In this document: positions 4,929 through 45,277 of the stretch, in pieces | How positions within the stretch are numbered: the stretch's first letter is position 1 | Layout of the letters: the number at the start of each line of letters is the position of its first letter | Source of the DNA: Amoeboaphelidium protococcarum X5 | Lineage: Eukaryota > Fungi > Aphelidiomycota | NCBI GenBank assembly: GCA_023515725.1 | Contig: JALDTO010000098.1 | Coordinates: 1,142,164 to 1,206,163 of the forward strand | Reading direction: 5' to 3' | Length of the DNA stretch: 64,000 bases | Translations under genes and position numbers: made by a program | The notes under the pieces: model-generated | Told to the model about the DNA's origin: nothing | The model's database searches: none | Seen by the model: the letters and a program-made list of their open reading frames with translations, nothing else

Positions 4929-5301
4929 CTTATTAAGATAGTGTTTAATCAAGTTAAATTCATTGCGAGATTGCAAGAAATCTAGGGAGGCTGTAACGAT
5001 AAAAATAACCATAATGCTGATCACATGACTACGCAACTTATTTGTATCCAATGATCTTATCAAACCGACAAACAATACTAAAGTACTCTAGATATGAGAT
5101 ATATTCATAGTATCAGAGCAGTATCTCAACTCATTCAAAAAATTACTATACTTGGCTATATAAGGTCATCAAGACTGAGTTCAATCATATGTAAACTCTA
5201 GGGTTCATTCATTCATTCAAAACTAGACCGTTCAAGTTGAAACAGTTACAGATATGGCACGAGGCGCGCGTCACATCGGCAGCCTGCACTGCGAACAGAC
5301 C

Positions 5302-5328
5302 GAGAGAGAGAGAAAGAGAGAGAGAGAG
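5302..5328. repeat. (GA)n microsatellite
   Basis: gagagagagagaaagagagagagagag. Confidence 0.8.
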
Positions 5329-5429
5329 CAGTTCTGTGTCGCTTTGATGGTCAACCGAAACGAAAAACGCGCTCTGTCTCTCGATCATAATCTCAGCCTG
5401 ATCAGTCCTCATCTCTTTTCTTTCGCAAC

Positions 5430-5856
5430 GTCAAGGTTGAGATTGGGACAAACTAGTAAACATTACAAGCCTTAACTGTGCTTTGTGCCTTCACTTCATT
5501 TAGCGTGTACTTGTGGCTCCCGTATAAGAAGAAGTGACTCTTTGGCGGCTTCGGGGTGTCAGCACCTGAGCTACATGTACATTCTAGATGACGTGTTGTT
5601 TGCCTTTACCACGCTAGTAGGAAAGTCCGCGGCTGCATATAGTGTTAGACTTGAGTCGTTCCATTAATTGGGACCACTGGCATTAAAAGAGACACGGTGG
5701 GTGAATCATTATGGCAAGCGAGTACTATTTTATTATTATAGATGTATGATGCCGATTCACTCCATCTTGAGATATGCCCAGGCTAATCATTTTGAGTGCA
5801 ATGTTCCAGCGGGTGGCAACACCTGTTACAGAATGCGGATTATACTTGACCTTGAC
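5430..5856 (+). ncRNA. RPR1: Nuclear RNase P RNA
   Basis: P1 GTCAAGGTTGAG (5430-41) pairs with CTTGACCTTGAC (5845-56); P2 TTGGGAC (5443-49) with GTTCCAG (5803-09); CR-I GGAAAGTCCGC (5620-30) pairs with GCGGATT in CR-V ACAGAATGCGGATTA (P4); CR-IV AGTGCAAT (5795-5802); CR-II-like AGAGA; P19 hairpin with GCAA loop; oligo-T at 5861. Confidence 0.85.
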
Positions 5857-5972
5857 TCCCTTTTCTCTTTTACACTTTACACTCTTACTTTCTTTATCAT
5901 TAATCTTCGTGTTAAACACGCTTCAACAGGGGCGTTGGTTGTCTTGTCCGCCTCTATACAACAATAATAAAG

Positions 5973-7016
5973 ATGGCTACCGGTTGCGCGGAGATTAGAG
6001 TCTCCGGGAATCAAGTGTCGTCTCTGGCTGCACATTATCCTCTCAAATTACACAAACTTTAATCGTCAATTAATACAGAGTCTGTGTATTTGTACCTCAT
6101 AACGTATGGTGGTGGATTACTAAGCGGAGACCATGCGCGCATTAATGTTGAAGTGAAGAATGGTGGATGCGTGTCTTTATACTCTCAAGCATCGACAAAG
6201 ATTTACAAGCAGTAGAAACTTTAAGCATTATCACCCTCCTCCTCAGCTCCTCTGGTCCAGACTTCTTGCAGTGAATGTTCGTTGTACTCTTATAAGGAAA
6301 GTGATAAAACAACGCGTCAAGACTTTTATAGCAAGGTGCAATCTGGCAGTGAATTTTACCATCTTCCTGAGCCTATTACACCATTTGCTGATTCAAGATT
6401 TTCGTAATGCTCTAATATAATTATGGATTTAATGTAATAATAATAAGCGCAAGACGGTAGTTAAAACAGTGATGATATTAGTACTTCAAGCGGAGATTTA
6501 CCAGACATAATATGGTTGGATTGGATGTCTTCAGGACGATCTGCGCGTGGAGAACGTTGGATTTTCGATTCATTTAGGAGTGAAACAAAGTTATCCATTG
6601 CAACAACAGATATGAAAGATGTACACAACGGAGAATGTCTTATATACCGCGACTGCTACTAGATATAGAGGCATAGCAGATTTGTGATGAAAGATCAGCT
6701 GAACGTTATGGGAACCATTCTTTTAGTCGCTGGTCCGAAAGTATCTCGCCTTATTGAGTCTATCAAGGATCACATTGATTCGCATCAAATTGGAACTCAT
6801 CTGCCTAAATAGAATCATCTCATGGCGTATTCTCCTATAATTTATAAACCATTATCTTCCAAATAGTCTCAAGTGGGTGAAGAATGCGTGGTAGGTATAG
6901 TGGTCAAGTTTGCATTTACAGAAGTTCACTTGGCGCGGTAATGGATTCTCAATGTAGTGCTGAAAGATTATGAGACTATCACAGGGCGGCGGAATCTATT
7001 CGCCAGGTAGTTATGA
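5973..7016 (+). CDS. ureD: Urease accessory protein UreD/UreH
   Basis: YPLKL, TYGGGLLSGD, SQASTKIYK, LPEPITPFADS, WMSSGRSARGERW; single exon, 347 aa. Confidence 0.9.
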
Positions 7017-8558: not shown

Positions 8559-8775
8559 ACGTGTTTGTTCTGATTCGCATCAAATTTAATGGTACAGATC
8601 CGTGAGCGACTTTATTATCTCCAGGTAGAAAAAGTTCAAGCTATCGCCCAGCAGTTCACTACTTTCTCATATCAGATTCGTAAATCCAACCTAGCAGAGA
8701 AGAGGCACGCCGGTCAGCTTTTAACAGCGAGATGAACATGATCTTGTCTTACTCAGACTAGTCCGTTATACTACT
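8559..8775 (-). pseudogene. Internal fragment of a Crinkler-like NTPase/REase gene (paralog of 11711-13318)
   Basis: 8659-8763 matches 12290-12394 at 92/105 nt by hand count; it has a premature TGA and a frameshift. Confidence 0.85.
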
Positions 8776-8905
8776 TATCATCATTATAGATCAGAGACAA
8801 GCGCGCCGGAGACCCCTTTATCAATATCTTGTCAACTCCTCTATGTTGATAAACTGAGAGGAGAGAGAGAGTTAAGCCATCCAACAGAAAAATTATCTTT
8901 AAGGC

Positions 8906-11277
8906 ATGATGTCTAATCTCACGAATCTTCTCTAGCTGCCCACGACTACTTTGCATTAATACCTGAGGCCTGTGGATCTATTGGAATTGTGTATTAGCTG
9001 CAAAGAATGCCGTGACACCATTCTTAAGTAAAGATTGCCTCTTTTTAAGGTGTACTTTTGGTACTATGGCCCTCTAATTGCTGCGGACCGCATCAGACAT
9101 CATGCGTACCTCCAGCTAACGTCTAAATAAGATTACAGATACTTCCTCCATTCTTATATTAAACATTTTCCGGTTCTATTAGACTTTGCAAGGCACCGTT
9201 ACGTCAATGAAAACGACGAGACTTTCATATTAGATATAGCATGGAGAAATGCCATCAAGGAGTTTTATCCCTCTAATACGAAAAGTTCTATTAGGAAGGG
9301 TAAGTACGAGCAAATAAGGTTTAAGAAATGGTCAGATTTGTATAGTAAGAACGAAATATATTGTACAGATAGCAAAGACTTGGTGCTGGCTTCATCTCAG
9401 CTTGACTTGATTATATCATTATTTGGCATAGTTGCGAAAGAGTTCTGGTATCCCGGGACTGAACAAGATCCTCCTGTTATGTCGGTTTTTGGTTATTATC
9501 ACGATGCTATAAAGAACTTCTGGCTTGATGCTCTGATGATTGTCGTAAATAAAGAATTTGATGCCCGAGACTATGATCATTGTAGGTCATTGAACCGGGC
9601 TTTTAATCGAATTTCTGGCTCGGTTCACCGCCTTGACGTATTTATCGATCAAATATGCGATTACTTTTGCCTTGGTACATGCGATGAAGTGAGAGAGAAA
9701 TTGTTCAATTACTTGGAATTTTCTCCCCATTTCTGTGGACTCTATGCGTATCTTAATATTCTCAAGTAACAAGACTTGATCGATGATAGTAAGAACCTAA
9801 AATAGTTCTTTTCTGAATTAGTGATGAAGATTTTGAACCACCCTGGCCAATCGAATCTTATTTCAAATGGTCTTCACCGATTTTGGTTGATCAGAGATTA
9901 TATGCAAATTTCTAATAAATTTGGTCAACTATTAACGCGTCATTTGTCTGCTGAGTGCATTCTCCAATAGATCGAAGAAGTGGAAGTTGCGTCTAGCATT
10001 GAATGGGGATGGGCTGTGTTGTCTCTACTAAAGTTGTACAAGAATGTTACTGAGATTAATGGTATTTACAGCTTGATTGTCATCGAAAGCTCAACAATGG
10101 TCTGGCAGTAGAGGCCATGAATTTGTTTATTGCTTTATATTCTTCCAAGGCTGAATACGCGTTTGAATGTGATACAGAACTGCTCTCTGATTCTGCAGTG
10201 TAAACGTTAGTCCAAGTGCTGGAATCACTATTGGAAAGTTAGATTGTACTTTGGAATGCTGTAGATTTTCAGATAGGGAAACCATTTTTATCTGCTGAGA
10301 AGTTCTTACTAGATCATAGATAATTTTTCATATGCAAGACTATATCAATGTTTAACCGAGTTCGCTGTAATGTAATGTATGATTGTACTGGGTTGCATGA
10401 TTAAGTGAAAATGATTGTTGAAAGTCTTGGTGGACTAAAGAAATTTACAAAGTATGTGCTAAGTATTCAGCCAGACGTATTTAGTGGACTGAATTATTGC
10501 CTTTTCATGGATATTCTATGCGATCACATCCCTCTTCATGATCAAATTACTCTAGAGGAAGTTTCCGTCCATATGGTGAAATTATGTTTTCAATAGACTC
10601 ACTTCTGCCCTGACATTCTAGCTTAATACTTTGAAAATATGTACAGGTGTAACGCGTACTCCCCGGTGGCTTGCTAGAAACTATTAAAGATTGCTGATGA
10701 TGAGTAGTTAGAGTGGCTATTCAACTATTTTAGTCAAGATGAGATAGTTGCTTTGAATATAGGATCACGGTTCTTGCAGCCGTGGGTTAATAAATTGATT
10801 AAGATTGAAGAAGACTCTTAATTCCCAGATAACATCATATAGATTGTGCAAATTTGCCATACAAATGATAAAAATCTATATTTTGCTCCCACTAGCGTTC
10901 GCAGAATTCTGGCTCACTGCATCAGTAATGCCGTCTTGCTATAGCCGGAGCACAGTACATCTAGATACTGGTTCTTTGAAGGATTGCCACTCTTCATTAT
11001 GCAGGAAAGAATCATACTGAGAATTTATATTGATATTTGGCCTCATGCAATACTAGCGTCTCAGAGTTTAAGAGTCTATGGGTATGAGGAGCTGGTTCGT
11101 GGCTTCTTTCATTGCATTGAGTCTAATGAACTTTTGCCTCAGGAGAGAGTATCGCTGATCTAGTCGTTCTGTCAAGAGGCTGCGGATGCTAATAATGATG
11201 CCTTGTTGGATGTGGCCTTGACGTTGGTAGAGCAGTCAAAGATCATTTCCATGGATGATTTGGAGCCTATAAGGTGA
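8906..11277 (+). CDS. Large protein with N-terminal F-box-like motif; frameshift between 10054 and 10117 (possible pseudogene)
   Basis: MMSNLTNLLQLPTTTLHQYLRPVDLLELCISCKECR; frame 2 open to TGA 10118-10120, frame 1 open from 10054 to TGA 11275-11277. Confidence 0.6.
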
Positions 11278-11410
11278 TACATTTGTAATACAATTGATAA
11301 TCCGATTTTATATCTTAATTTTAATAACTGGAGGGCCACATTTCGTTTTATCTCTCTCTCCTTTAAAATCTGTGACAGCTTTGACGCGTCGATTTGTCAC
11401 TCTCAAACTT

Positions 11411-11620
11411 ATGAACGCGGCATCTATACTTGAACTCTTGCTACTTCAGGACTCAAATCTTTATGGTTATTTACGGCCTGTAGATTTATTGCAGTCGAAA
11501 TTGTCATGTCGCGATGGTCAAGATATAATGTTGGGGTAAAAGTCTCTAATTCGTCGCACTTATTGGAAGCACTGTATTACGGACCAATGTTGGCAGTCTA
11601 TAGCTGAAGAGTGTCAGTGA
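11411..11620 (+). pseudogene. Truncated paralog of the F-box-like N-terminus
   Basis: YLRPVDLLQSKLSCRD versus YLRPVDLLELCISCKE; out-of-frame YYGPMLA versus YYGPLIA. Confidence 0.65.
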
Positions 11621-11710
11621 TTATATAATGAGTCGCCTAAAGATTTAGATATTTTATATTCCCAATATTTTTCATGAGATTTTATTTAATTCATAAAATG
11701 CAGCTAGAGT

Positions 11711-13318
11711 TCAATTAGTGAATTTATAATCCAGATCGGACACGAGCAGGAACTAGGAAATCTTACTCAGCAAAGACTTGTTGCCTTCAACTAAACGAAA
11801 CCTCTTCACGGCATTAACAAAGATTTACTGCTTTACAACGCCTTGCTCCACTCCATTTATTAGTTCAGACGCAGTATTATACCCATGATTGGCCAGAGAC
11901 GCAGCTCTTTTTATGCCTATTCCAGACAGACTTTCGACAGGACAATTTTCAATCGATCTCATTTCTGGCTCAATTTTGCGCGCCTTAAAATCATCCATAC
12001 CTTTGCAGACTACGAACACCAGATTTATCTTCAAATCTTTTCTATCAGCATAACCTTCTTTAACCAGAAATTCAATCAAAGAGCCAGACTTTACATCGTG
12101 ATTATAATCAAGTGTGATCTAGAACAAATAAAGTTTATTAGGAGCAAGTTCCAACAACCCATCAAAAACAGGACAATTTTACGAATGGACGTGTTTGTAC
12201 TGATTCGCACCAAAGTCTAATGCCACAGATCCGCCAACAGCTGGAGAATCCTCAAGAGGCAGGAGTTCAAACTATCCTCCAGAGGTCAACTACTTTCTCA
12301 TATCAGATTCGAAAATCCAACCTAGAAGAGAGGATGCTCGCGGATCAGCTTTTAAAAGCGAGATGAACATAAACTTGTCGTGCTCAGATTAGTCAATTAT
12401 ACTTTTTTAAACTTCATCTGCCACATAAGCAGAACAGAACTGCAGCTTATACATCCTCAGGGTGGTAAACGCGCCAAATTCAGGTTTCATAAAGAGCATT
12501 CGATGGACGACTTCTTTCGAATTAGCGTTAAACACCACAAAGTCATTCAATTAGGAATAAGACTTGATACCTCGACATTCTGCTTGGAGTTCCTAGATAT
12601 AATCTTAAACCTAATCAGGATCCAATGTCAGGCAAATACGCGCAGTGCCACCAACTAACGAATATCTTCTCTCAACCTCCGCTTGGCTAATATCCAAATT
12701 CAATAACTCACGCGCCTCGAGCAACTCATCCAGAGACCAAAAAGGCATGTAGTAAATAGCAGGTGCACTTTTGATACTGGACTTGAGCCAGCTATAGTTC
12801 GGGCTAGTAAAGCAAATCATTTATGCATAATCAGGGAAGAAAGTAGGCGGCCCATCATACAGATGAATAGCATCCGGATAATCAGTGATGAGATCCCTTG
12901 CGTCAATTTTTTTCAACTCGCCATTTGCGCTTCTAGCATGCTGAATCTCCTGAGCCCCATCTCTCAATCCCTTATGTGGCGGATAAACGACGACTTTTAA
13001 CAAATTTCTACCCCCATCAAAAGCGGCTGTCACAATCTACTTGAAAGGATTGGATTCGCGATACTTTTAAAAGAAATGAGCATAAAATACAGACTTGCCA
13101 ATACCCGGAGTTCCGCTTACAGTAGTAATAAACTTTTTTTTGTCCAAGGTTAGGATGAGATATTCATAATACTCATCATAGCAGTTACGAATGTAATATT
13201 TAGAAACGGCAGCCTTGTTAGACTATGGCAACTAGAGCTGAGCAGGCGTCATGTCGAATACAGACTACGCCATTATATTATCATAGGTATCATTGAAGGC
13301 ACGCGAGTTAAAAGTCAT
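11711..13318 (-). CDS. Crinkler (CRN/RHS)-like effector-family protein: P-loop NTPase + REase-fold domain + C-terminal HhH
   Basis: YIRNCY, GTPGIGKS, LYDGPP, FTSPN, MPFWSLDEL, VGGTAR, GWIFE, NCPVFDG, LFQITLDYNHDV, SLSGIGIKRA; 535 aa open frame. Confidence 0.8.
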
Positions 13319-16692: not shown

Positions 16693-17246
16693 TCATTTAT
16701 CATTGTTGTTCTCACGCACAATAATCACGGGGAAATCACTATTGTGTAGAATGTAGTCACTGACACTGCCCAGTAAGGATCTCTTAATCAGACCAAGTCC
16801 ACGGCTACCCATAACAGTCGCCGCCGGCTTGAACTTGTCAATGTACTCCAGAATGACTTGTCGAGGATCTCCTCTGACAATCACAGCCTCACACTTCATC
16901 TTGTCGGCAATCAGTCGATTAGTGTACTGAGATACCAACTGCTTGGCAGACTCTTGCACCTTCTACTCATACTCATGGATAGCTTCTTAAGACCACTCTA
17001 CACAGTGTTATTAATATGAAAAATAAGCTGATACATGTTCTAAATTGATAATGATATTAACAACAACTTACCCTTCTTCTGTTGCATGTCACTGGTTGGA
17101 ATTGGCAGGTCCAGACTCTTGTAATCGCGCGAGGCATGCAAGAGCCAAATGTGATCATCTGGTCGTAAGAAATTCTCTGCACTCCATCTGAATGCATAAT
17201 TAGCAGAGCTACTTCCATCAATACAAATTAAAATATTTCTAGGCAT
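16693..17246 (-). CDS. Universal stress protein (UspA family), one intron
   Basis: MPRNILICIDGSSSANYAFRW...GDPRQVI...VMGSRGLGLIKRSLLGSVSDYILHN. Confidence 0.92.
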
Positions 17247-17725
17247 GTTTACTATACTAGCTTTATCACTTAAGTTTAATTTAAGAAGTATAGGAAGAAA
17301 AAAATTATAACAAAGACCAAGAGAAGAGGGAGAGACAGGCAAAGCGGCGCGCTGAGTCATAAACTGTCACAATTGGTGACGTTTGAACTTATTAAGCCTA
17401 AAGAGAAATTGTGCGCCTGATTGGTCCGCCATTCCAAGGTTTGGATCTAGGTAAATTATAGTCCAGTCATCGATTTATGAGGCCTCATTAGTACCTGTTA
17501 ATACTTTTTACTCTTTCCACTACTATCATTGAAAATGAACTCAATGTTAATTTTACGCCCATCACTAGCTGTGGCTATTGTTATTGCAACCAAATGTCAG
17601 CTTGATGCGATGAACCAGCTCATCGTAACGATGACAATGCAAACGATCACATTGTCGACTGATATATGTCGCGTCGAATCAACTCTAGTATCCACCACTC
17701 TTTAATACTTTCATTACCTAACACA

Positions 17726-20700
17726 ATGACAGTAAAAGGGGCGCATTTGTAGTTTAGGAAGCGGTAGCTGTTTACAAACTCACGACCAATCGATCTACGT
17801 CGGTTGTATGAGATTGCGACAACATCGATAGGCGAAGGACTGAAGATTCAGGTAGACTTTTATGGCACTTTTTTCAGGCAGTTGCGTCGCATATTTAAGC
17901 GAAGTAAGTCACCCATAGATGCATGTATCAATATGATAAAAGAAGCATTACCTCTCGATCAATAACTTTGCGCAGGTGAAAAAACTATCCCGTTGAAAGA
18001 TGTGTTGACTTTGGTGTTTGATGGTGCGCCGTCGCGTGAAAAAGTTAGAACATAGTTGAACAGAACCAAGTCTAGATTGAAACAGATTATGAAATTGCAT
18101 GAGAAGCTGAATGGTTTGCCAAAAGACTCTAGAGTAAGCAAGTCGAAATGGTCTCAAATAAGAAAGTTGGAGTTATCAACGTGGCTACTGCATGATTCCG
18201 AATCATCTTAAGCTGCGTCAAAAGTTAAGCGACGCTGGCTACCGTGTCGATCTCGCTGCTGGTGAGGCCGATGTCCACATTGCAAAGTCCTGCTAGCCCA
18301 TCGTTGCCATAAGTTTTGATTCTGATTTATTCATGCACAAGAATATAAAGGTTGCTGCTAAACCCACATTTAAATCAGGCTTGATGAAATTTTTTGTCAT
18401 GGAACGTAGTGCCGTGTGCTCAAAACTGAAGATCAGTAACGATAAGTGGGTTTCTCTGGCGATTGTATCTGGGAATGATTACTCCGATAATGTGTATGGC
18501 TTTGGTTTTGGGAAGAATCTGAATATTATCCGCTCTATCGACTTTGGTTATAATGTGAAGCAGATTGTCGCGTAGTATGCCAAGATTATGGATGCAGGAT
18601 CGCACTTTGACGTGGCTTTGCAAGTGTTTGATGATTGTTACGAGTCTTTCAATAGTCAGTCCCTTAATGAAGAAGGCCGTACTCATCAGTAAAGTTGTAC
18701 ACTCAATTGTGTGGTTCAATAAATTTGCAGTGCTGAAGTCATTGAGTGGAGTATGATCGAGAATCTAGAGAAGATAGCTGCATCTGCCGATTTGTCATTC
18801 GATGAGCGTAACTGCCTGATGCTTAACGCGTTAAAATCATTATATGGCAGATGGATAAAGTAGGTGGAATAGCTGAAAGATGATAAGACTCGGTTGTATT
18901 AAGAATGGAAGAAAGGTCGCCATCAAGTAGGCCATGACCGTGAGTCGGTTAAGTATTTGTAGTTGCCAAAAAAGTATTAGGGATATAATAGATTCTGTCC
19001 CCTGTTCGAGAAGAATGCTCCTGCTGAAGCTGGTAATATCTTCAGAAAGAGCCGATATCTAAATAAAGCCGTTGATGTGAATCGTCCTTCCAAGTCTGAG
19101 ATACCGCCTATATAGGCGACAAGAACGATAGAATAAGAGTCGGATCAGTAGAATGATGCTCATGGAAGCTCTGAAGATTTATTGCAGCCTGTTGCAAATA
19201 ATAGACACCGTAACAAGAGACGCCGTGACTCCGGTAAGTCTGATAAGGTGTAGCGCGGCAACTATCGTCAAAGTAGTGCCAAAACTCGCGATAAAGTGAC
19301 TGCAATGCCTTCTGGTAAGAAGAGAACCAACAGTTAGGAGACACAGCTTTTTCGGTCACTTAACCGACGTCATGCTATTTGCACTAAAGAAATTGGTCAT
19401 ATATAAAAGTCTTTGTCGAAAGGCCAAGCATCTGCTGCCTTGCAAATCTTATTGAAGTATTCCATTGATACTGTAATGAAAGAGATGAATCTCCTCAAAA
19501 GAATGGCTTAGTTGGGGGCGCGGTGGTTTATTGATACCATTTTAAAGAATTTTCCTGACTAGATTTAACTGTTAGACAGCATCTGCTATGCTGATACTCC
19601 TGGACAAGGTGGTCGTAAATTTTGGCAGGGTATATTACGGTTCTTGCGCAATGGTAAATCTACGCGCAGCCAGAAATGTGCTGCTGTGCTGAAGTTTGGA
19701 TAGTTAATTAAAGATTAGTTAACGATTCTAGACAAGCTTTAAGGTTAGTTCGACAGAAGGATTACCGTTTCGTAGATCATTGATTAATTGGCTATAGTTT
19801 TAGATTCTGAGTTTGCTTCCCAAGTTATTGGTCGTATGGCGCTCCTTGCTGCCAAAGTCTTGGAGTTTGATGAAAGCAAGCGCGATTAAATAACTGAGAT
19901 TGATATGCTGGATTCAATTTTCTAAAAGTATGAGGCATTAAATTTTCTACTACCAGGGGAAGAGCGATTTACATACCCTCTTTCGTCACTGTCAGAGTGT
20001 TATGTGACTTTTACTGAAAATTCGTTAATGCAGCTTATATAGAGTGTTATTACTAATTGCTGGGATGTCGCTAAGTAGCAGCTTATTTAGAACGGATTAT
20101 GTAATGTGTCTGCTTAAAGCTTACGCCTGGAATTAAATGAATGGTATCAAAATGGTAAACTAATGAAGCAGAAGGGAGAAACGTTGGCTGGCATTCTTGG
20201 CTTGAAGATGAATGGAGGTCTTCGATTGCTCAAAGACTATGATCCAATATCTACTAAAAGCAAGATTCTTGGCTGTACTTTCATCGCCAATGGTATAGTG
20301 TTGAAGGTTCATTGCATTAACACCAAGTAGTCAAAGCCAATCGAACGTGTTTAAAGTGGTTCTCGCTCTTTGCTGTAAGGCGCTGAAGCTACTAGAGTGA
20401 AGATCCAAAGGAAGTTTTCGAGTAGGATTCGCGTGCCAGCAATTGAGCTATCTGACTACTGGATATGCTGCATTGATATAGGGGAGAGGTATACAGTGGG
20501 CGCTGTGGCCGAGAAAGGAGCTGGCGAAAGTCGTCAATTGCGATCACTTGCGATTGAGTCTGCTGCGTTGAACGAGCCAAATAGAAGATTTGAAAAGTGG
20601 TTTGGCGAGAGATCTCTTACGGTTTAGAATGCCGAACGCTCTCTGGAACGTCTATAGGTCGAGTCACTATAGGATTATTGGGTTCGTTATATAGCAACAT

Positions 20701-21230
20701 ATAGTTAACTTAGAGAGTTTTACTGCAGTAGTCGATGGAAAAGAATTTCATGGGATTAAAAGAAAGCGTAAAGAGCGGAATATGACCGAGCTACAAATGT
20801 CATTTTAAAAATGGTGGATGGTAAAATTAACCAGGAGTGTTACGGCAAAGTTATATTTGGTCTTGGTGATGCGTAGTTTGAGAGCATGTAAACTACTCAT
20901 TAATCTTTTGAAAAGTACTTCGTAGCAAAGGTGAAGAGTCTAGGATATCCTGTCATCTATCTAAATGAATATCTCACCTCCTAAAGAGCTCCATGCTGCG
21001 GCCGAATGTGCGAAAGCTTCGGTTTGCGTGTAAAGTATTGTAGACAGTGTCATAAGTTTTTTCACCGTGATATCATGGCCGCTGAGAATTTGGTGAAAGA
21101 CGCAAAAGCTGTATTAGCAGGGCTTGAAAGACCCCCTTATCTGTGTAGCAAAGCTAGCGGCAACATCTAGAGGGAAGAAGGATCTATGCGGCTTGGCAAG
21201 CGCGCAATTCAGTTACAGACGATATCGTGA
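17726..21230 (+). mobile_element. FEN1/XPG-like 5' nuclease fused to a Fanzor1 (TnpB-like) RuvC/zinc-finger nuclease, ~1170 aa, one +1 frameshift near 18190-18215
   Basis: N-terminal: MTVKG, VDFYG, VFDGAPSREK, EADVHIA, SFDSDLF, SGNDYSDNVYGFGFGK. C-terminal: CIDIGE (D 20475), IFGLGDAQF, LNEYLTSQ (E 20967), PCC..C..CRQC, HRDIMAAEN (D 21069), RPPYL. Confidence 0.85.
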
Positions 21231-21345
21231 AGATTGAGTTCTTGTAAAACTTTTATTTCACACTTTAACAACTATTCACACGGCATATTAGAAATATTCT
21301 TCACGTCCATCAATAATACAAAGCATCATCAAATACACATTCAGT

Positions 21346-23843
21346 TCAGCCGGAGCACATCATGCAGTCATCCTTGTTGTTGATAGAACAAGACAGAGCG
21401 GCCAAGTTCTTGGCAACTTCATCACTCTCACCAGAGATACTGGACTCGTATTCATCATTTTCCTCCTTCAGAGCATTCTAATCCACAGTGAATTTGATTG
21501 CATCAACTGCTGGACGACTTCTCAAGTAATACATACCAGTCTTCAATCCCTTTTTCCAACCATAAAAGTGCATGCTCGTCAACTTGCCAAAGTTAGGCTC
21601 AGCAATATGAATGTTCAGCGACTGAGACTGGTCAATGAAAGCACCACGGTCAGCAGCCATATCAATGATGATCTTCTATGAAATCTCCCAGGTGGTCTTG
21701 TACAGTTCCTTGATGTCATCAGGAATACCACGGATACGCTAAATACTGCCACTATCAGCAATAATTCTGTTCTTCATTGAATCATTCCATAGTCCCATGT
21801 CAGTCAGATCCTTCAGCAGATGAGGATTCACAATCTAAAACTCGCCAGAGAGGACACGGCGCACATAAATATTGGACGTATACGGCTCGAAGCATTCATT
21901 ATTTCCCAGAATCTAAGAGGTGGAAGCAGTTGGCATCGGTGCAACCAAAAGACTATTACGCACACCATGCTTAGCAATCTTAGCCTTCAACTCTGCCCAG
22001 TTCCAGCGGTCAGAAGGAGTGACATTCCACATGTCATATTGCAGAATGCCTTAACTAGCAGGAGAGCCTGGATAAGTCTCATAAGGACCATCTCTTTCAG
22101 CCAGTTCACAACTAGCCTCCAATGCAGAATAGTAGATGGTCTCAAAGATGTCACGATTCAGTTGACGAGCTTCAGGAGAATCGAATGGGAAGCGCATCAG
22201 GATAAAAGCATCAGCCAGCCCCTGGACGCCCAATCCAATAGGACGATGTCTCATGTTCGAGCGTCTAGCAGCTTCAACAGGGTAGTAATTGATGTCGATA
22301 ATCTTGTTCAAATTCTTAGTAACGACTTTAGTCACTTGACGAAGCTTCTCAAAGTTGAAAGTCTTCTTCTCAACAAAGTTGGGTAGAGACAAAGAGGCCA
22401 AATTACAGACAGCAACCTCATCTGGAGCACTGTATTCAACAATCTCAGTGCACAAATTACTGCACTTGATGGTGCCCAAATTCTTCTAGTTACTCTTCTC
22501 ATTACAAGCATCTTTGTACAGCATGTAAGGAGTACCAGTCTCAACTTGCGACTCCATAATTGCATACCACAACTTCTATGCCTTCACAGTCTTACGAGCA
22601 ATTCCCTGTTATTCATACTGCATGTAAAGCTGTTCAAACTTTTCACCATAGCAATCAGCCAGGCCACGAGCTTCATTCGGGCAGAAAAGACTCCAGTCTT
22701 CATTGTTTTCAACTCTCTTCATAAACAGGTCTGGAATCCAAAGAGCATAGAACAGATCACGAGCGCGATTCTCTTCCTTTCCAGTATTCTTCTTCAGGTC
22801 CAGAAAGTCAAAAACATCTGCATGCCAAGGCTCCAGGTACATTGCAAAAGCACCAGGACGCTTGTTTCCACCTTGATCAACATATCGAGCAGTGTTGTTA
22901 TAGACGCGCAGCATCGGGACCAGTCCGTTGGAGTATCCATTAGTTCCACCAATGTACGAGCCTGCAGCTCTGATACAGTGAACATTAAGACCGATACCAC
23001 CAGCACTCTTACTGATCATGGCGCAAGTTTTGAGAGTGTCATAAATTCCCTCGATGGAATCATCAGACATTGTGAGCAAGAAGCAACTAGACAATTGAGG
23101 ACGAGGAGTACCAGCATTAAATAGAGTAGGACTTGCATGGGTGAAAAACTTTTCGCTCATCAGATTGTATGTCTCAATAGCAGACTCGATATCTCTACCA
23201 TGAATACCGATAGAGACTCTCATCAACATGTGCTAAGGACGCTCGGCAACTTTTCCATTGATACGCAGCAAGTAACTTCTCTCCAGAGTCTTGAAACCAA
23301 AGAAATTGTAGTTAAAGTCACGGTCATAAATGATGGCAGAGTTCAGACGTTCTGCATTCTCCATGATGATAGCGTACGTTTCTTCACTAATCATCGGAGC
23401 CGGCTTGCCATTTTTTGGATTGATATAAGTGTACAGATCCTCAATAACTTGAGAGAACATCTTCTTGGTTTCCTTGTGCAGATTAGACACAGCGATACGC
23501 GCAGCAAGGATAGCATAATCAGGATGTTTTACGGTCAAACACGCAGCAGTTTCAGCAGCCAAGTTGTCCAATTCGACAGTAGTGACACCGCTATAAACAC
23601 CATTGATAACCTACAAAACATCATGAGATACTTGAAGTAAAACGTGTACTACATACCTTCTAAGTAACTTCAACAGGCTCAACAAAGTTTGTGTTCAAAC
23701 CGTAACACAACTTGCTGATACGAGAGGTAATTTTATCAAAGAGCACATTTTCAGTGCGCCCGTCTACACGAAAATTACAATGCTATTGGTAATGACAATG
23801 ATGGGTGGTGAATTAAACACTTACCTCTTTTTAGGACATACAT
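21346..23843 (-). CDS. RNR1: Ribonucleoside-diphosphate reductase large subunit (introns 23764-23824 and 23611-23656)
   Basis: MYVLKR|DGR ATP-cone; [48 protein letters not shown]; C-terminal CxxxxC pair. Confidence 0.98.
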
Positions 23844-39113: not shown

Positions 39114-39534
39114 TTTCCACTATTATTATTATGACTTGCAGAACTTAACTGAGTTGGGGAAAAAATAGAATTAACGACTCGATCGCGTTTGAAAAGTCTC
39201 CCAGTTAATTCTTCTTCCCTGTAAAATAGCTGTAGCTTTGTGATGAAACGAGCAATAGGAGCGTACCGTGTGCTAGTTGATATATCCTTTTAGCATAATG
39301 ATTATCATGCCATTTCGCACAGATATGGTATTCTTCATCATCGTTGATGATCCTATCGTTTGATCATATTTTCACTCATCCCAAATGTGTTACCAACAGG
39401 CAAAGTTTGTCGCTTATCAATTGGATTGATACTGTATTCTACTTTTTTATCTTTTCTCCCTTAGACATTGATAAATATAAAATTTAAGGTCTTTATATAA
39501 TAATCCTGGCAATAAAAGTATTGTAGATTAATTA

Positions 39535-42247
39535 ATGACCGTTTCAGGATAGTAGAATTTGTATGGAGGACTGCTTGGTGGAATCAATCCATTAAAGGAG
39601 CCACTGTCTTTACTGATAATTTAGACTCTTCTGATAATCACACTGTTTCGCCTCTCCTAAATGGCTCTGAAACGGATTAGATAGCCGACTGTGTTGGGTC
39701 ACATACTGACAGGCATCCTCATTGGGCCCTCTGTGCTTGGGCAGATTCCAGGATTTCGGGATAGTTTGTTCCCAGATTCTAGTATGCCTCTGCTCAATGT
39801 TATCGCCAACTTTGGACTGATATTCTATCTCTTTATCGTTGGACTGGAGTTGGACTTATCCGCCGTATCTAAGCAGGTAGAGTAGTCTCTGTTTATATCG
39901 ATAGCTGGAATGGTTGTTCCTTTTATGCTTAGTGGAGGTACTGTGTATTTGCTGTGGACCATCTATCTGAGAGACAGAACATCATACGGCACATTGTATT
40001 TATTTACTGGTGTGGCGTTGTCCGTTACATCATCCGCTGTTCTCATGCGTATCATTAATGAGATGCGCCTGTTTGCAACGCAGGTTGGTGTGCTCAGTAA
40101 TACTGCGGCTGCTTTTGATGACGCGGCTGCCTGGGTTGCTCTTGCATTGATGCTGGGAATCTGTGGTTCCAACTCTGCTGTGGACACAGTGTATGTTGTA
40201 ATCTTGGGTGTGGCTTTCGTGTTGTTGATGATTTTCCTTTTGAAACCAATGCTTGAAAGGGTGGTAGCCTCCGGAATAAGTAATGATGGCGCGATAGATC
40301 ATTGGGTATTGGCAGTGATTATGATTGGACTTTTATCGGCAGCCATAACGGCGCATCTTATTGGTGTGGACGTGACTATGGGTGGATTTGTGACTGGTGT
40401 ATGTATTTCTAGAAAGAACAACTTTCACTTGCGTATCACTGAGAAAGTTGAAGATTTCGTTGAAGTTATCTTTCTGCCGTTATACTTTGCATATAGCGGC
40501 TTAAGAACTGATTTTACTCTACTGAATGACCCTGTATCGTGGGGTATGATTCTGCTTCTAATCGCTACTGCTTGTATGGGCAAGATCTTTGGGTGCTTCT
40601 GTGCGGCGCGTTACATCAAATATCCCATGGCGCGAATCTCTGGCTATAGGATTTTTGATGAATTGCAAAGGGCTGGTTGAGTTTTATGCTATAAATTGGG
40701 GCCTCGACTTTAATATAATCGATCAGAAGGTGTTTACGATATTTGTTGTCATGTCTGTTGTTGTTATTCTGATGATCGTGCCGTGTGTATCCTACATATA
40801 TCCACCCACTTATTACAAGAAATACAGCGCTAAAGCAGATGACGCAGAATCTCCTGATGATATTCAACTCTCTACACTGGCCCAGTTTCGGCCCATGTTC
40901 TGCCTCCCCAGCCTTACATATACTCCAACGATGATGAATGTGGCACAATTATTGCATAAAAGGACTTCTTTATTCTTATAACAGTCATTGTCTCAGTCCT
41001 AGTCTAAAGAAGTTGCTGAATCCTTTGAAGTACACGCTCTTAGAATAATAGAAGTATCTGAGAGGAGTTCAAGTTTAATTAAAGCTGCCCAGCTCACACA
41101 GCAGATGGACCAAGATCCCATTCTTAAAGTTTTCCGCACCTTTGCTCTATCAAATGGATATGAATACTTTTAGCATATCTCTATAGCATCCATATAGAAT
41201 GGAGCTAATGATGTTTGCGAGACTGCTTAAGGAAATAATATTGGCACTCTAATTGTACCTTGGGGTAACCCAAAAGAGAAGTTTGCCGACAATATGATTG
41301 AATCAACAGGTAACAATTATCAGCACCATCATAACATGGTCAGAAGTCTTCTAAAGCGATGGAACAAGTCAATGGCTATAGTTATGGATAAGGGGCTGAA
41401 TGCGTTAGATGTTGGAGGTGATTTAAAAATGTTAGTCCCTTTTTTCGGTGGCCCAGATGATAGAGAAGCCTTGAGGTATGCTCGGATGATTGCAGCTAAA
41501 GGCTCAATCAAGATTGATATCCTTCATGTTGTTCAAGTTCACGGTACGTCTCATCTTGCAGGTGATGTCACTGCACAGCCTCGAATCGCTGAACTTGACT
41601 AGAAGATGCTAGATTAGTTTATCGGATTTGATAATGTCTCATATACAAAAGTGCAATGGAGTTGTAAAACTGATACTAATCCTATTGCGACTAGACTTGG
41701 TAGTTAGCATTACATTCTCTCTATAGTTGGTCATGTTGGTTCCAAATGGGCACTGGCCATGTAATAGAATTAGGCACTATTCGATAATGAGTAGACTCTC
41801 AATTTCCAAGAGTTGCGTCAGATTTCTAACATTGTATTCTCAGATACTAGTGGTGTTCCAGTTGAATAGTTTACTGTGCGTGGTCCATCGTAACTTGTCT
41901 CTTATGGAGATGCTCTCTCAGCCAATGACACTATACGGTCAATCAAATCAATTGGCCGAAAAGAGAAGATATCTTAGCTTGCTATGTCGGAGAGTACCAC
42001 CAAGGCGCGATCATCGGTTGACAATATAGATGATCAGGTCAATGGGAAAGTTAAGGCGTAGAAAGTTTATTCTGGTACTGTTTACAATGTATTAGGCGAG
42101 ACTGGCGATTTGATTAATCATTTCGCGCCCAATACTTCCCTCATATCAATAAGAAAGGTGCCGTTTGATAACCTCATGGCAAGTCTGGTATAAGACTATC
42201 ATCTGTCTACTCCTACAGCGGTTGATATACTCAACCAAGTGTAATGA
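39535..42247 (+). pseudogene. CPA2 K+/H+ antiporter (KHA1/CHX-like), copy 1, with a 1-nt insertion at ~40621
   Basis: GILIGPSVLG, FLPLYFAYSGLRTD; ATC AAA T ATC CCA TGG versus ATT AAA ATC CCC TGG in copy 2 shifts the frame before MNCKGLVE. Confidence 0.8.
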
Positions 42248-42577
42248 TTTGGGCCATTGTGATAATTTTGATCAATAAAATCACACATTAATCAATTTAA
42301 TGATTTTTTATCTGAAATTCAAACAAGTATATATCAGTAATAACTTCATCGATGAATTAAAGTCACTGCTATACCAAGGTAATGCATTGCTTAAGTTGTG
42401 AGATCAATGATTGGATAGAGATTAGATTAAATCTGAATCGTTTCGTTTCGTTTCGCAAAAAATTTTAACTTTCTTTTCTTCGCCTCCTTTTAATTATCCT
42501 TGATCAAGAATTGAATTGACATTTTTTTATTTAAACGTTTACAGGGTTAGTCATCAAGCTCTTCATTTCTAAATAAA

Positions 42578-45277
42578 ATGGCTGGCGGTGGATCAGGCGA
42601 AAATCTGCATGGTGGACTTCTTAGTGGAATAAATCCTTTGAAAGAGCCTCTATCTCTACTTATCATCCAGACTTTGATCATCATTATTCTCTGTCGAATC
42701 ACGCAGATCTTTTTGAAGAGACTGAAACAGCCCACAGTGATTAGTCATATACTTGCCGGAATACTCATTGGACCATCTGCATTGGGATAAATACCCGGAT
42801 TTAGGGAAAATTTATTTCCAGACTCCAGCATGCCCTTACTCTTTGTTATCGCTAATTTCGGGCTGGTCTTCTATCTATTTATTGTGGGCCTTGAACTCGA
42901 CCTAACTTTGCTGGCGACGCGTATCAGAAGATCGCTACTTATATCGGTCGCTGGTATGGTGGTCCCTTACATGCTGAGTGGCGGCACGGTGTATCTTTTG
43001 TGGACCATATACCTGGACGACAGTGTCTCTTTTGGAACTTTATTTCTGTTTACTGGCTTGGCTCTCTCCATCACGTCCTTCCCCGTGCTAGTGCGTATCA
43101 TTAATGAAATGCGTCTGTTTATCACGCCGGTCGGTGCCCAGACTGTCACTGCTGCAGCCTTTGATGATGCTGCTGCATGGATTCTGCTTGGACTTGTGCT
43201 AGGAATTGTTGGCTCTGATTCGCCGATACATACCGTGTATATAATTCTGATGGCCATCGCTTTTGTGGCTGCAATGTTTTATTTTGTGAAGCCAATGCTT
43301 GAGCGACTTGTTGTCACAGGCGTGAATAATGACGGCGTTGTGGATCATTGGGTGCTTGCAGTAATAATGATTGTTTTGCTCTCTGCTGCTATGGTTGCCC
43401 ATCTGATTGGCGTTGATCTCACTTTGGGTGGCTTTGTGACTGGTCTGTGCATTTCGCGGAAACATAATTTCCATCTGCACATTACTGAGAAAGTGGAAGA
43501 TTTCGTCGAAGTCATCTTTTTGCCAATTTACTTTGCTTATAGTGGTCTCAGAACGGATTTTACATTGTTAAATGACGCTGTTTCGTGGGGGATGGTTCTG
43601 CTTCTAATTGCCACTGCTTGTATGGGAAAGATATTTGGATGCTTTTGCGCTGCTCGTTACATTAAAATCCCCTGGCGTGAATCTCTGGCTATTGGGTTGC
43701 TGATGAATTGTAAAGGTCTGGTAGAGTTGATCGCTCTCAATTGGGGCTTGGATTTTAATGTCATTGACCGCAAAGTGTTTGCGATATTCATTTTGATGTC
43801 TGTGGTAGTTACTTTGATGATTATGCCGCTAGTATCGCTAATTTATCCTCCAAATTATTACAAAAAGCATTTGGGCAAGAAAGACAATGAATAGTCTGCC
43901 GACAGTATCAACTTATCTATCTAAAATCACTTTAAGCCTATGTTCTGCCTGCCTAGTCTTGCATTTACTCCCACCATCATGAACATAACTCAGTTACTTC
44001 ATCGATAGACGGCCAGGGACAGTGCATTGAAGTCAACTTATGACAGTAATGAATAGTCAAATTCATCATTTGAAGTACATGCTCTTCGTATAGTCGAAGT
44101 TTCTGAGAGAAGTTCAAGTCTGATGAAAGCTGCGTAATTAACACAAGAGTTAGACGAGGACCCGATTCTGAAAGTATTTCGTACTTTTGCGCTGGCCAAC
44201 AATTACCAGTATGACTAACATATATCTATTGCGCCTACCAAAACTGCCCCTAACGAAGTCTGTGAGATTGCAGCTGAACATAACATTAACACACTGGTTG
44301 TGCCTTGGAATAATCCTAAAGAGCAGAATCATGGAGCTTAACAGGACTTATTGGGAAGCTCGTTTCTTCACCATCATCACATGGTTAGGAATCTTTTGAA
44401 AATGTGGAACAAATCTATGGCTATTGTGGTCGATAGAGGCCTAATAGCTGCAGAACTGACGGACAATTTGAGGATATTGGTTCCTTTTTATGGAGGGCCT
44501 GACGACCAGGAGGCTCTCAAATACGCGCTTCTCATGTCTGACAAGGATAAAGTGAAGATTGACGTCCTTCACCTGCTTGAACGGTCGCCTGATAATGTCG
44601 ATCATTTTCATTCATAGCAGCATGTAGTAGATGGTCCAGAGAAAGAGATGCTCGATGTGTTACTTTCCCGTCCTAATGTGGTTTATGAGCAAGTCAATTA
44701 TACTTCTCAGTTAGGCAAACACCCTATAATCGATAGATTGGCGGAAAAGTAATATATATTAGCCATATTCGGTCGCATTGGAGCTAAGTGGGCCCGCACA
44801 ATGAAGTCTTCGCCGGAAAATTACGACTTTGAGGCAACTGTTAGAAGTCATGACCTTCGAAGCATGTCTAATGTCGTATTTTCATCAACCGATGGCCATC
44901 CTGAAGAGTAATTGACCGTGCGTCACCTCTCGCCGTTAAACTACACTAATGATCTTCACGACGCACAAGGCACTGTGAAATCTTTGCGATCCTTGATGCG
45001 AAAAAATAGGTCATCGGCGCTGTAACCTCTTTAGTAGTCTCATGTGGCCAGCCAATTGTCAGTAGATACTATTGACGTGGCCGTTTAAGACCGACAAAGA
45101 TCTCAATTTGCGTACAAGGCGTTCTCTGGCACAGTATTCAATGTACTTGGCGAGACTGGTGATTTGATCTATCATTACGCTCCGAAGACTTCACTTATAG
45201 CTATCAGAAAAGTTCCTTTTGATAACATAATGCAAACACTTCCTTAATAAGCTAACTAAAGTCCTGATGATGAATGA
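42578..45277 (+). CDS. KHA1: CPA2 K+/H+ antiporter (KHA1/CHX-like), copy 2, intact
   Basis: QPTVISHILAGILIGPSALG, SITSFPVLVRI, AAAFDD, LMNCKGLVELI, PFYGGPDDQEAL. Confidence 0.9.

Follow-up and report, generated by a model that had tools for sequence, protein, structure and literature searches.

We describe a gene of Amoeboaphelidium protococcarum X5 that codes for a complete Fanzor1 with a FEN1/EXO1-fold 5′ nuclease fused to it. The gene lies at positions 17726-21230 of the window, the 64,000-nt stretch of DNA analyzed here, and the architecture is confirmed: comparison of both halves with known structures matched the FEN1/EXO1 and Fanzor1 folds, including for the C-terminal half. The element that carries the gene is best read, from its ends and from its kinship with a Helitron of the same genome, as a non-autonomous Helitron. 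An earlier sequence-only reading of this DNA had placed the feature at 17726-21230; these are the coordinates of the gene, whereas the whole feature is larger, at 17364-21244 (Table 1).

Table 1 Features of the fusion gene and its element in window coordinates (a slash within a motif marks the insertion junction, here and in the text)
Feature	Position	Strand	Evidence
Non-autonomous Helitron-type element (best reading), ~3.9 kb, carrying the fusion gene	17364-21244	+	Absent from homeologous contig C249; three other full copies
Left flank: target CA/TA (inferred TAM CATA), 4-nt TAAA target duplication	17358-17363	+	Filled versus empty site
Left-end 33 nt, inverted relative to other copies; 5′ TC-(TTC)n start lost	17364-17396	-	Left-end alignment
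FEN1/EXO1/XPG-fold 5′ nuclease domain, aa 1-300, with H3TH motif	17726-18630	+	Invariant alignment columns, PDB profile matches, Foldseek
1-nt insertion	18210-18211	+	Shifts the frame; extra A not in three sibling copies
Helical and basic linker	18631-19367	+	Low pLDDT in the P0003 model; least conserved, 38% aa between families; NLS-like stretch at 19203
Fanzor1 (WED-REC-RuvC-TNB)	19368-21230	+	Structural alignment of the sister protein; PF07282
Candidate omegaRNA scaffold: hairpin 1 (21188-21205), AGTT linker, stem 2	21186-21246	+	Motif conserved in eight lineages
Predicted guide (right flank)	21247-21266	+	Position inferred from Fanzor1 architecture (PMC10711439); 20/20 to the vacant C249 site beside CATA

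Genetic code and gene model

The gene neighboring the fusion, RNR1, contains 11 in-frame TAA/TAG codons and no TGA across 782 codons, and forms an unbroken ORF with table 6. RNR1 thus confirms that TAA and TAG encode Gln in A. protococcarum. Under this code the fusion gene runs from an ATG at 17726, through a frame change at 18210/18211, to a TGA at 21228-21230, and its translation comprises 1168 aa with an X placed at the break, in line with the protein of about 1170 aa and one frameshift that had been proposed. Remote searches were run with stop-free pieces or database proteins, the X-joined form being confined to local scripts. The window gene is annotated as KAI3640636.1, labelled hypothetical protein, and KAI3632336.1 is a further match to the fusion family in A. 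protococcarum. The element occupies the short intergenic gap between a universal-stress-protein-like gene (window 16700-17200, minus strand) and RNR1 (window 21349-23694, minus strand). Elsewhere in the window, tandem gene duplications were observed at 39472-45274 and 8582-12403, with spacings of ~3045 and 3631 bp and 69-77% identity.

The extra A at 18210/18211 is private to the window copy and could reflect either a genuine lesion or an error of assembly. Frameshifts are present in 4/4 full copies of the window family (family 1), one to four in each and at differing positions. Because of its frameshift the window copy is probably inactive, being either dead or mis-assembled. That it is active, by programmed +1 frameshifting or through an intron spanning 18210, we consider extremely improbable: GT-AG pairs lie nearby and the NCBI model KAI3640636.1 does splice across the break, but that model omits conserved FEN1 helices and the extra base is found in this copy only.

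The 5′ nuclease domain

All the FEN1/XPG/EXO1 motifs that had been listed for the N-terminal ~300 aa are present, and the residues expected of such a domain are in place (D44, D99, K106, R113, E180, D182, D198, D200 and D251). Six diverse proteins retain the seven acidic positions together with the Lys and Arg of the arch, except that the second Asp (D99) is Glu in a sister family, family 2. A profile of the N-terminal region matched archaeal FEN1 (E 1e-15) and human EXO1 (2e-11) in the PDB, as well as Rad2 and human FEN1; both profile and Foldseek scores are slightly higher against FEN1 than against EXO1. Pfam XPG_I yields 15.5-18.8 bits, under its gathering score of 24.9. By these comparisons the domain classes as a divergent branch of the FEN1/EXO1/XPG 5′ nucleases. 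It shares with that superfamily, which includes the giant-virus FEN1-like and poxvirus G5 proteins, the fold, the seven acidic residues, the helical-arch Lys/Arg and the H3TH motif, and differs from it in falling below Pfam cut-offs and in being tethered to a predicted RNA-guided nuclease inside a transposon.

The closest look-alikes of the domain are the giant-virus FEN1-like and poxvirus G5 clusters. A viral origin of the fusion was considered and set aside, as scans of viral contigs found no fusion. The host carries FEN1/EXO1/XPG genes of its own, and the domain is so remote from them (22-39 bits) that it does not represent a recent host capture. The basic, NLS-like stretch that had been noted between the two halves is found at aa 493.

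The Fanzor1 half

The C-terminal assignment to Fanzor1/TnpB holds, with the RuvC triad at D917 (20475), E1081 (20967) and D1115 (21069) and with the TNB zinc finger and RD motif present. The length originally given for this half, ~350 aa, does not: it spans ~600 aa including WED and REC. The Cys zinc finger that had been described is likewise present and is non-canonical: in this subgroup Ala stands in for the first Cys found in many homologs. The family-2 Fanzor half, when modelled (pLDDT 81), aligned with VIA-align to PpFz1 (Z 18.6, 484 residues, rmsd 4.9), SpuFz1 (Z 16.6, 472 residues, rmsd 4.5) and GtFz1 (Z 15.2), so that structural matches to Fanzor1 overall reach Z 15-19 across about 460-480 residues. 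For the model of P0003, a standard-code homolog (pLDDT 71), the top seven Foldseek matches are SpuFz1, GtFz1 and PpFz1, with FEN1 next, which establishes the presence of the Fanzor1-type WED/REC architecture. The fusion thus shares with these three proteins (PMC10432273, PMC11423790) the WED-REC-RuvC-TNB fold (~480 aligned residues) and the D-E-D triad, together with a right-end structured RNA that has target bases in its scaffold (a candidate here) and a TAM like CATA/ATN (inferred here). Unlike them, it adds ~550 N-terminal residues with a second nuclease and has no terminal inverted repeats, at 11-16% identity. A separate multi-copy Fanzor-like family with weak RuvC-II/TNB matches was also observed in the genome (C212:54.3k, C205:403k, C244:445k, C13:152k, C146:653k, C264:95.5k and C200:104k).

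Homologs and selection

Family 2 is 49% identical to the window protein over 1166 aa columns and is represented by an uninterrupted 1148-aa ORF on contig C179 and by an intact ORF in strain FD95. A profile search with the RuvC-I region retrieved full-length metagenomic homologs of 1102 and 1256 aa, in the standard code and 31-34% identical throughout, and two further full-length metagenomic homologs have 1281 and 1131 aa. Both domains are therefore encoded by one ORF on C179, in strain FD95 and in four metagenomic proteins, as the sequence-only reading would have it, and these intact ORFs rule out a wrong-code artefact or two adjacent genes. At four more metagenomic loci (L064, L065, L073 and L075) a FEN1 domain precedes a same-strand Fanzor by 2-3 kb and is in phase with it. 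Given the intact single-ORF homologs and the metagenomic loci, the fusion is real and not confined to the A. protococcarum genome. In the ESM Atlas there is a eukaryotic cluster of 58 members with a 1312-aa representative, whose commonest taxon, from three known members, is Mucoromycota. Searches for homologs by word index had low sensitivity (1, 4 and 2 matches), and the taxonomic range is therefore a lower bound.

The catalytic residues of both nucleases are invariant among homologs that are 30-40% identical. Where family-2 copies retain both domains, the FEN1 domain shows a dN/dS of 0.11-0.17 and the Fanzor one of 0.23-0.28, values indicating that the family-2 fusion is under purifying selection; family 1 is more relaxed (0.2-0.7). 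Helitrons capture genes, and most copies here are broken, as would be expected if one or both domains were dead cargo, passively captured and of no present function. We judge this very improbable in view of the invariant active sites, the dN/dS values well below 1, the recurrence of the same fusion in distant lineages and the remoteness of the 5′ nuclease domain from the host genes.

The Helitron element

Alignment of flanks for element ends and empty sites, which had been suggested as a check, placed the ends of the window element and identified its vacant site on the homeologous contig C249, where the flanks join at CA/TA. Four full family-1 copies, the window copy included, are 95-96% identical with unrelated flanks, and older copies retain only the 3′ 0.8-1.2 kb. 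Canonical copies (C264:681k, C233 and two FD95 family-2 copies) start with A/TC followed by a TTC run; this left end is altered in the window copy and in C264:1.83M and ambiguous in the C179 copy, and left junctions show inversions and short duplications. Right ends are CTAG/T in family 2 and CTTG/T in family 1, with hairpins present, the family-1 CTTG departing from the CTRR 3′ end of Helitron1. No terminal inverted repeats were found in the element, and target duplications are absent or variable.

The lack of terminal inverted repeats and of a fixed TSD excludes a DDE cut-and-paste transposon of the Mariner-like Spu-1 kind. LINE-like target-primed retrotransposition, considered because of the 5′ inversions and truncations, was dropped when the Helitron left end was found to be shared. 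The family-1 left end also occurs at C179:635.8-640.9 kb, where Helitron_like_N (E 7e-41) and PIF1 (E 9e-40) follow it on one strand; the body of this C179 Helitron and the empty sites on C214 and C207 are known here by their coordinates. Spread without a transposase, as originally supposed, finds no support in these observations: given the Helitron-type ends of the element, the left one in common with a Rep-PIF1 Helitron of the same genome, new insertions are best explained by Rep acting in trans.

Fanzor1-carrying non-autonomous Helitrons with precise 3′ ends, altered 5′ ends and short duplications have been described in Chlamydomonas as CRe-1,2,3 (PMC3627910). The fusion element resembles them: it too lacks a transposase of its own, has its 5′ end in common with a true Helitron, and combines precise 3′ ends with 5′ ends that are altered or truncated. 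CRe-1,2,3 differ in being Helitron2 elements with TTTT targets, multi-exon genes and no reported FEN1 domain, whereas the fusion element has TC...CTAG or TC...CTTG ends, A/TA targets and an intronless gene.

Several further features of the loci were recorded. The first ORF of the Helitron with the same left end (L053:1492-2669, C179:635.8-637.0 kb) looks, in our reading, like a small OB-fold protein; another copy of this Helitron (L054, C154:220-221 kb) is internally inverted, and a third, older copy lies at C249:187-188 kb. Relative to the filled locus L022:2630-2711, the vacant homeolog on C212 (L040, C212:719679-719753) differs by a 76-nt inversion with short filler that begins at the insertion site and may be a cleavage scar or have formed during insertion. 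A family-2 5′ piece at C98:1541.4-1542.4 kb and a right-end motif at C98:1558.9-1559.1 kb, ~17 kb apart on the same strand, may represent a single element interrupted by a large insertion. A 300-bp repeat (L024:870-1180, L023:1263-1566) has ~40 copies, several pairs of which are ~5.2 kb apart, as is typical of LTRs; one copy lies near each of two fusion elements. An old 3′-only copy is flanked by two tandem units, 79% identical, that encode glycine-rich proteins (L026:2490-3701, 5121-6400), and is an old insertion because it is common to both subgenomes and strain FD95.

Candidate omegaRNA, guide and target motif

Family 1, family 2 and six metagenomic lineages share a hairpin that starts with GCG and leads into a short A-rich linker and AGTT; this motif is placed at the 3′ end of the gene or immediately beyond it. 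A descriptor derived from these lineages, and hence partly circular, found only two other sites in 341 kb. The hairpin stem is paired in 83% of cells, whereas slid controls reach 29-54%; covariation is not above shuffles, and no Rfam match to the candidate was found. In family 1 the motif overlaps the last codons of the ORF. Stem 2 pairs TAC with the last G of the element and the target-derived TA of the flank, and TA directly follows every intact right end, which matches the fixed target bases that Fanzor1 scaffolds are reported to absorb (PMC10711439). The conserved right-end structure is likely an omegaRNA.

Reconstructed targets are CA/TA for the window copy, C264:681k and probably C264:1.83M, and TA/TA for C233 and the two FD95 family-2 copies. 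From these targets we infer a TAM of about YATA for the fusion Fanzor; known fungal Fanzor1 TAMs include CATA and ATN (PMC11423790, PMC10432273).

The first 7 nt past the TA are more alike in the four young family-1 copies than expected by chance (p 0.002, or 0.008 against an AT-rich background, in a post hoc comparison). Such similarity could arise if the guide biased new insertion sites by coupling RNA-guided targeting to Helitron integration, yet family 2 has no seed similarity (p 0.92-0.96), and with n=4 a target preference of Rep or pairing with the AGTT of the scaffold would give the same pattern; we therefore regard guide-biased insertion as improbable. Equally doubtful is its stronger form, a natural eukaryotic RNA-guided transposition in which the guide seed would partly pick the insertion site and the 5′ nuclease would prepare the R-loop junction.

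Proposed function

On balance, we lean towards a model in which copying is the work of the Helitron Rep, and the Fanzor cleaves vacant alleles whose ends are then trimmed by its tethered nuclease, favoring homing. Rep-PIF1 of an autonomous Helitron with the same left end would copy the element to new A/TA sites. A transcript of the 3′ end would yield the omegaRNA, its last stem using the TA of the target and the next 15-20 nt of flank serving as guide. The protein would then find the vacant allele through a TAM of about YATA and the guide match, and RuvC would cut it; the tethered 5′ nuclease would trim 5′ ends or flaps at the break, which would channel repair into recombination with the filled allele, restoring or spreading the element. 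Architecture, element ends, copy number, empty sites and selection are read from the sequence, and the later steps we infer. Cut-and-resect homing would fit these data. At two vacant homeologs, C249 for the window copy and C214 for the second C264 copy, the site is contiguous, and there is therefore no efficient drive now; that the C249 site is intact in spite of its guide match fits family-1 proteins being dead.

A less probable but still plausible alternative retains an RNA-guided Fanzor and assigns the FEN1 domain to another step, namely flap or primer removal in Helitron rolling-circle replication and strand transfer, or excision of the omegaRNA from the overlapping mRNA. The somewhat better match to FEN1 than to EXO1, the viral look-alikes, the overlap of the family-1 RNA motif with the ORF and the rearranged left junctions are in keeping with such a role. 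Yet the domain is fused to Fanzor, not to Rep, in every long locus examined, and the host has FEN1/EXO1/XPG genes of its own.

Homing after end trimming, the model we lean towards, has a parallel in the restorative homing of IS200/IS605 TnpB (PMC13565253), where an HUH-mobilized element also carries an RNA-guided nuclease (predicted here) that should target the vacant site; the fusion element differs in being a eukaryotic Helitron, with Rep in trans and an added end-processing domain. Taken as a whole, the data support the two-nuclease architecture, the Fanzor1 identity, intact active sites, homologs with both domains in one ORF and a candidate omegaRNA at the right end; they do not support the transposase-free spread of the original interpretation.

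Novelty and significance

Fanzor1 in Helitrons is already known. In the literature searched, most subscription papers and Repbase lying outside it, no account of a fusion between a FEN1-type domain and Fanzor or TnpB came to light, and no paper combined 'Fanzor' with 'XPG'. Supplementary Table 1 of PMC10432273 contains a 1219-aa A. occidentale Fanzor (KAI3658238.1), named only hypothetical, whose N-terminus is FEN1/PIN-like by eye; the architecture therefore probably sits unremarked in published data.

A natural Fanzor that carries its own predicted 5′ end-processing nuclease lends itself to a direct test of homing as what Fanzors do for eukaryotic transposons, and the hybrid genome offers the sites in both filled and vacant form. 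The window copy is a broken representative, the intact proteins being those of family 2 or of metagenomes. The fusion constitutes a natural counterpart of engineered Cas-exonuclease fusions, for which intact standard-code homologs exist.
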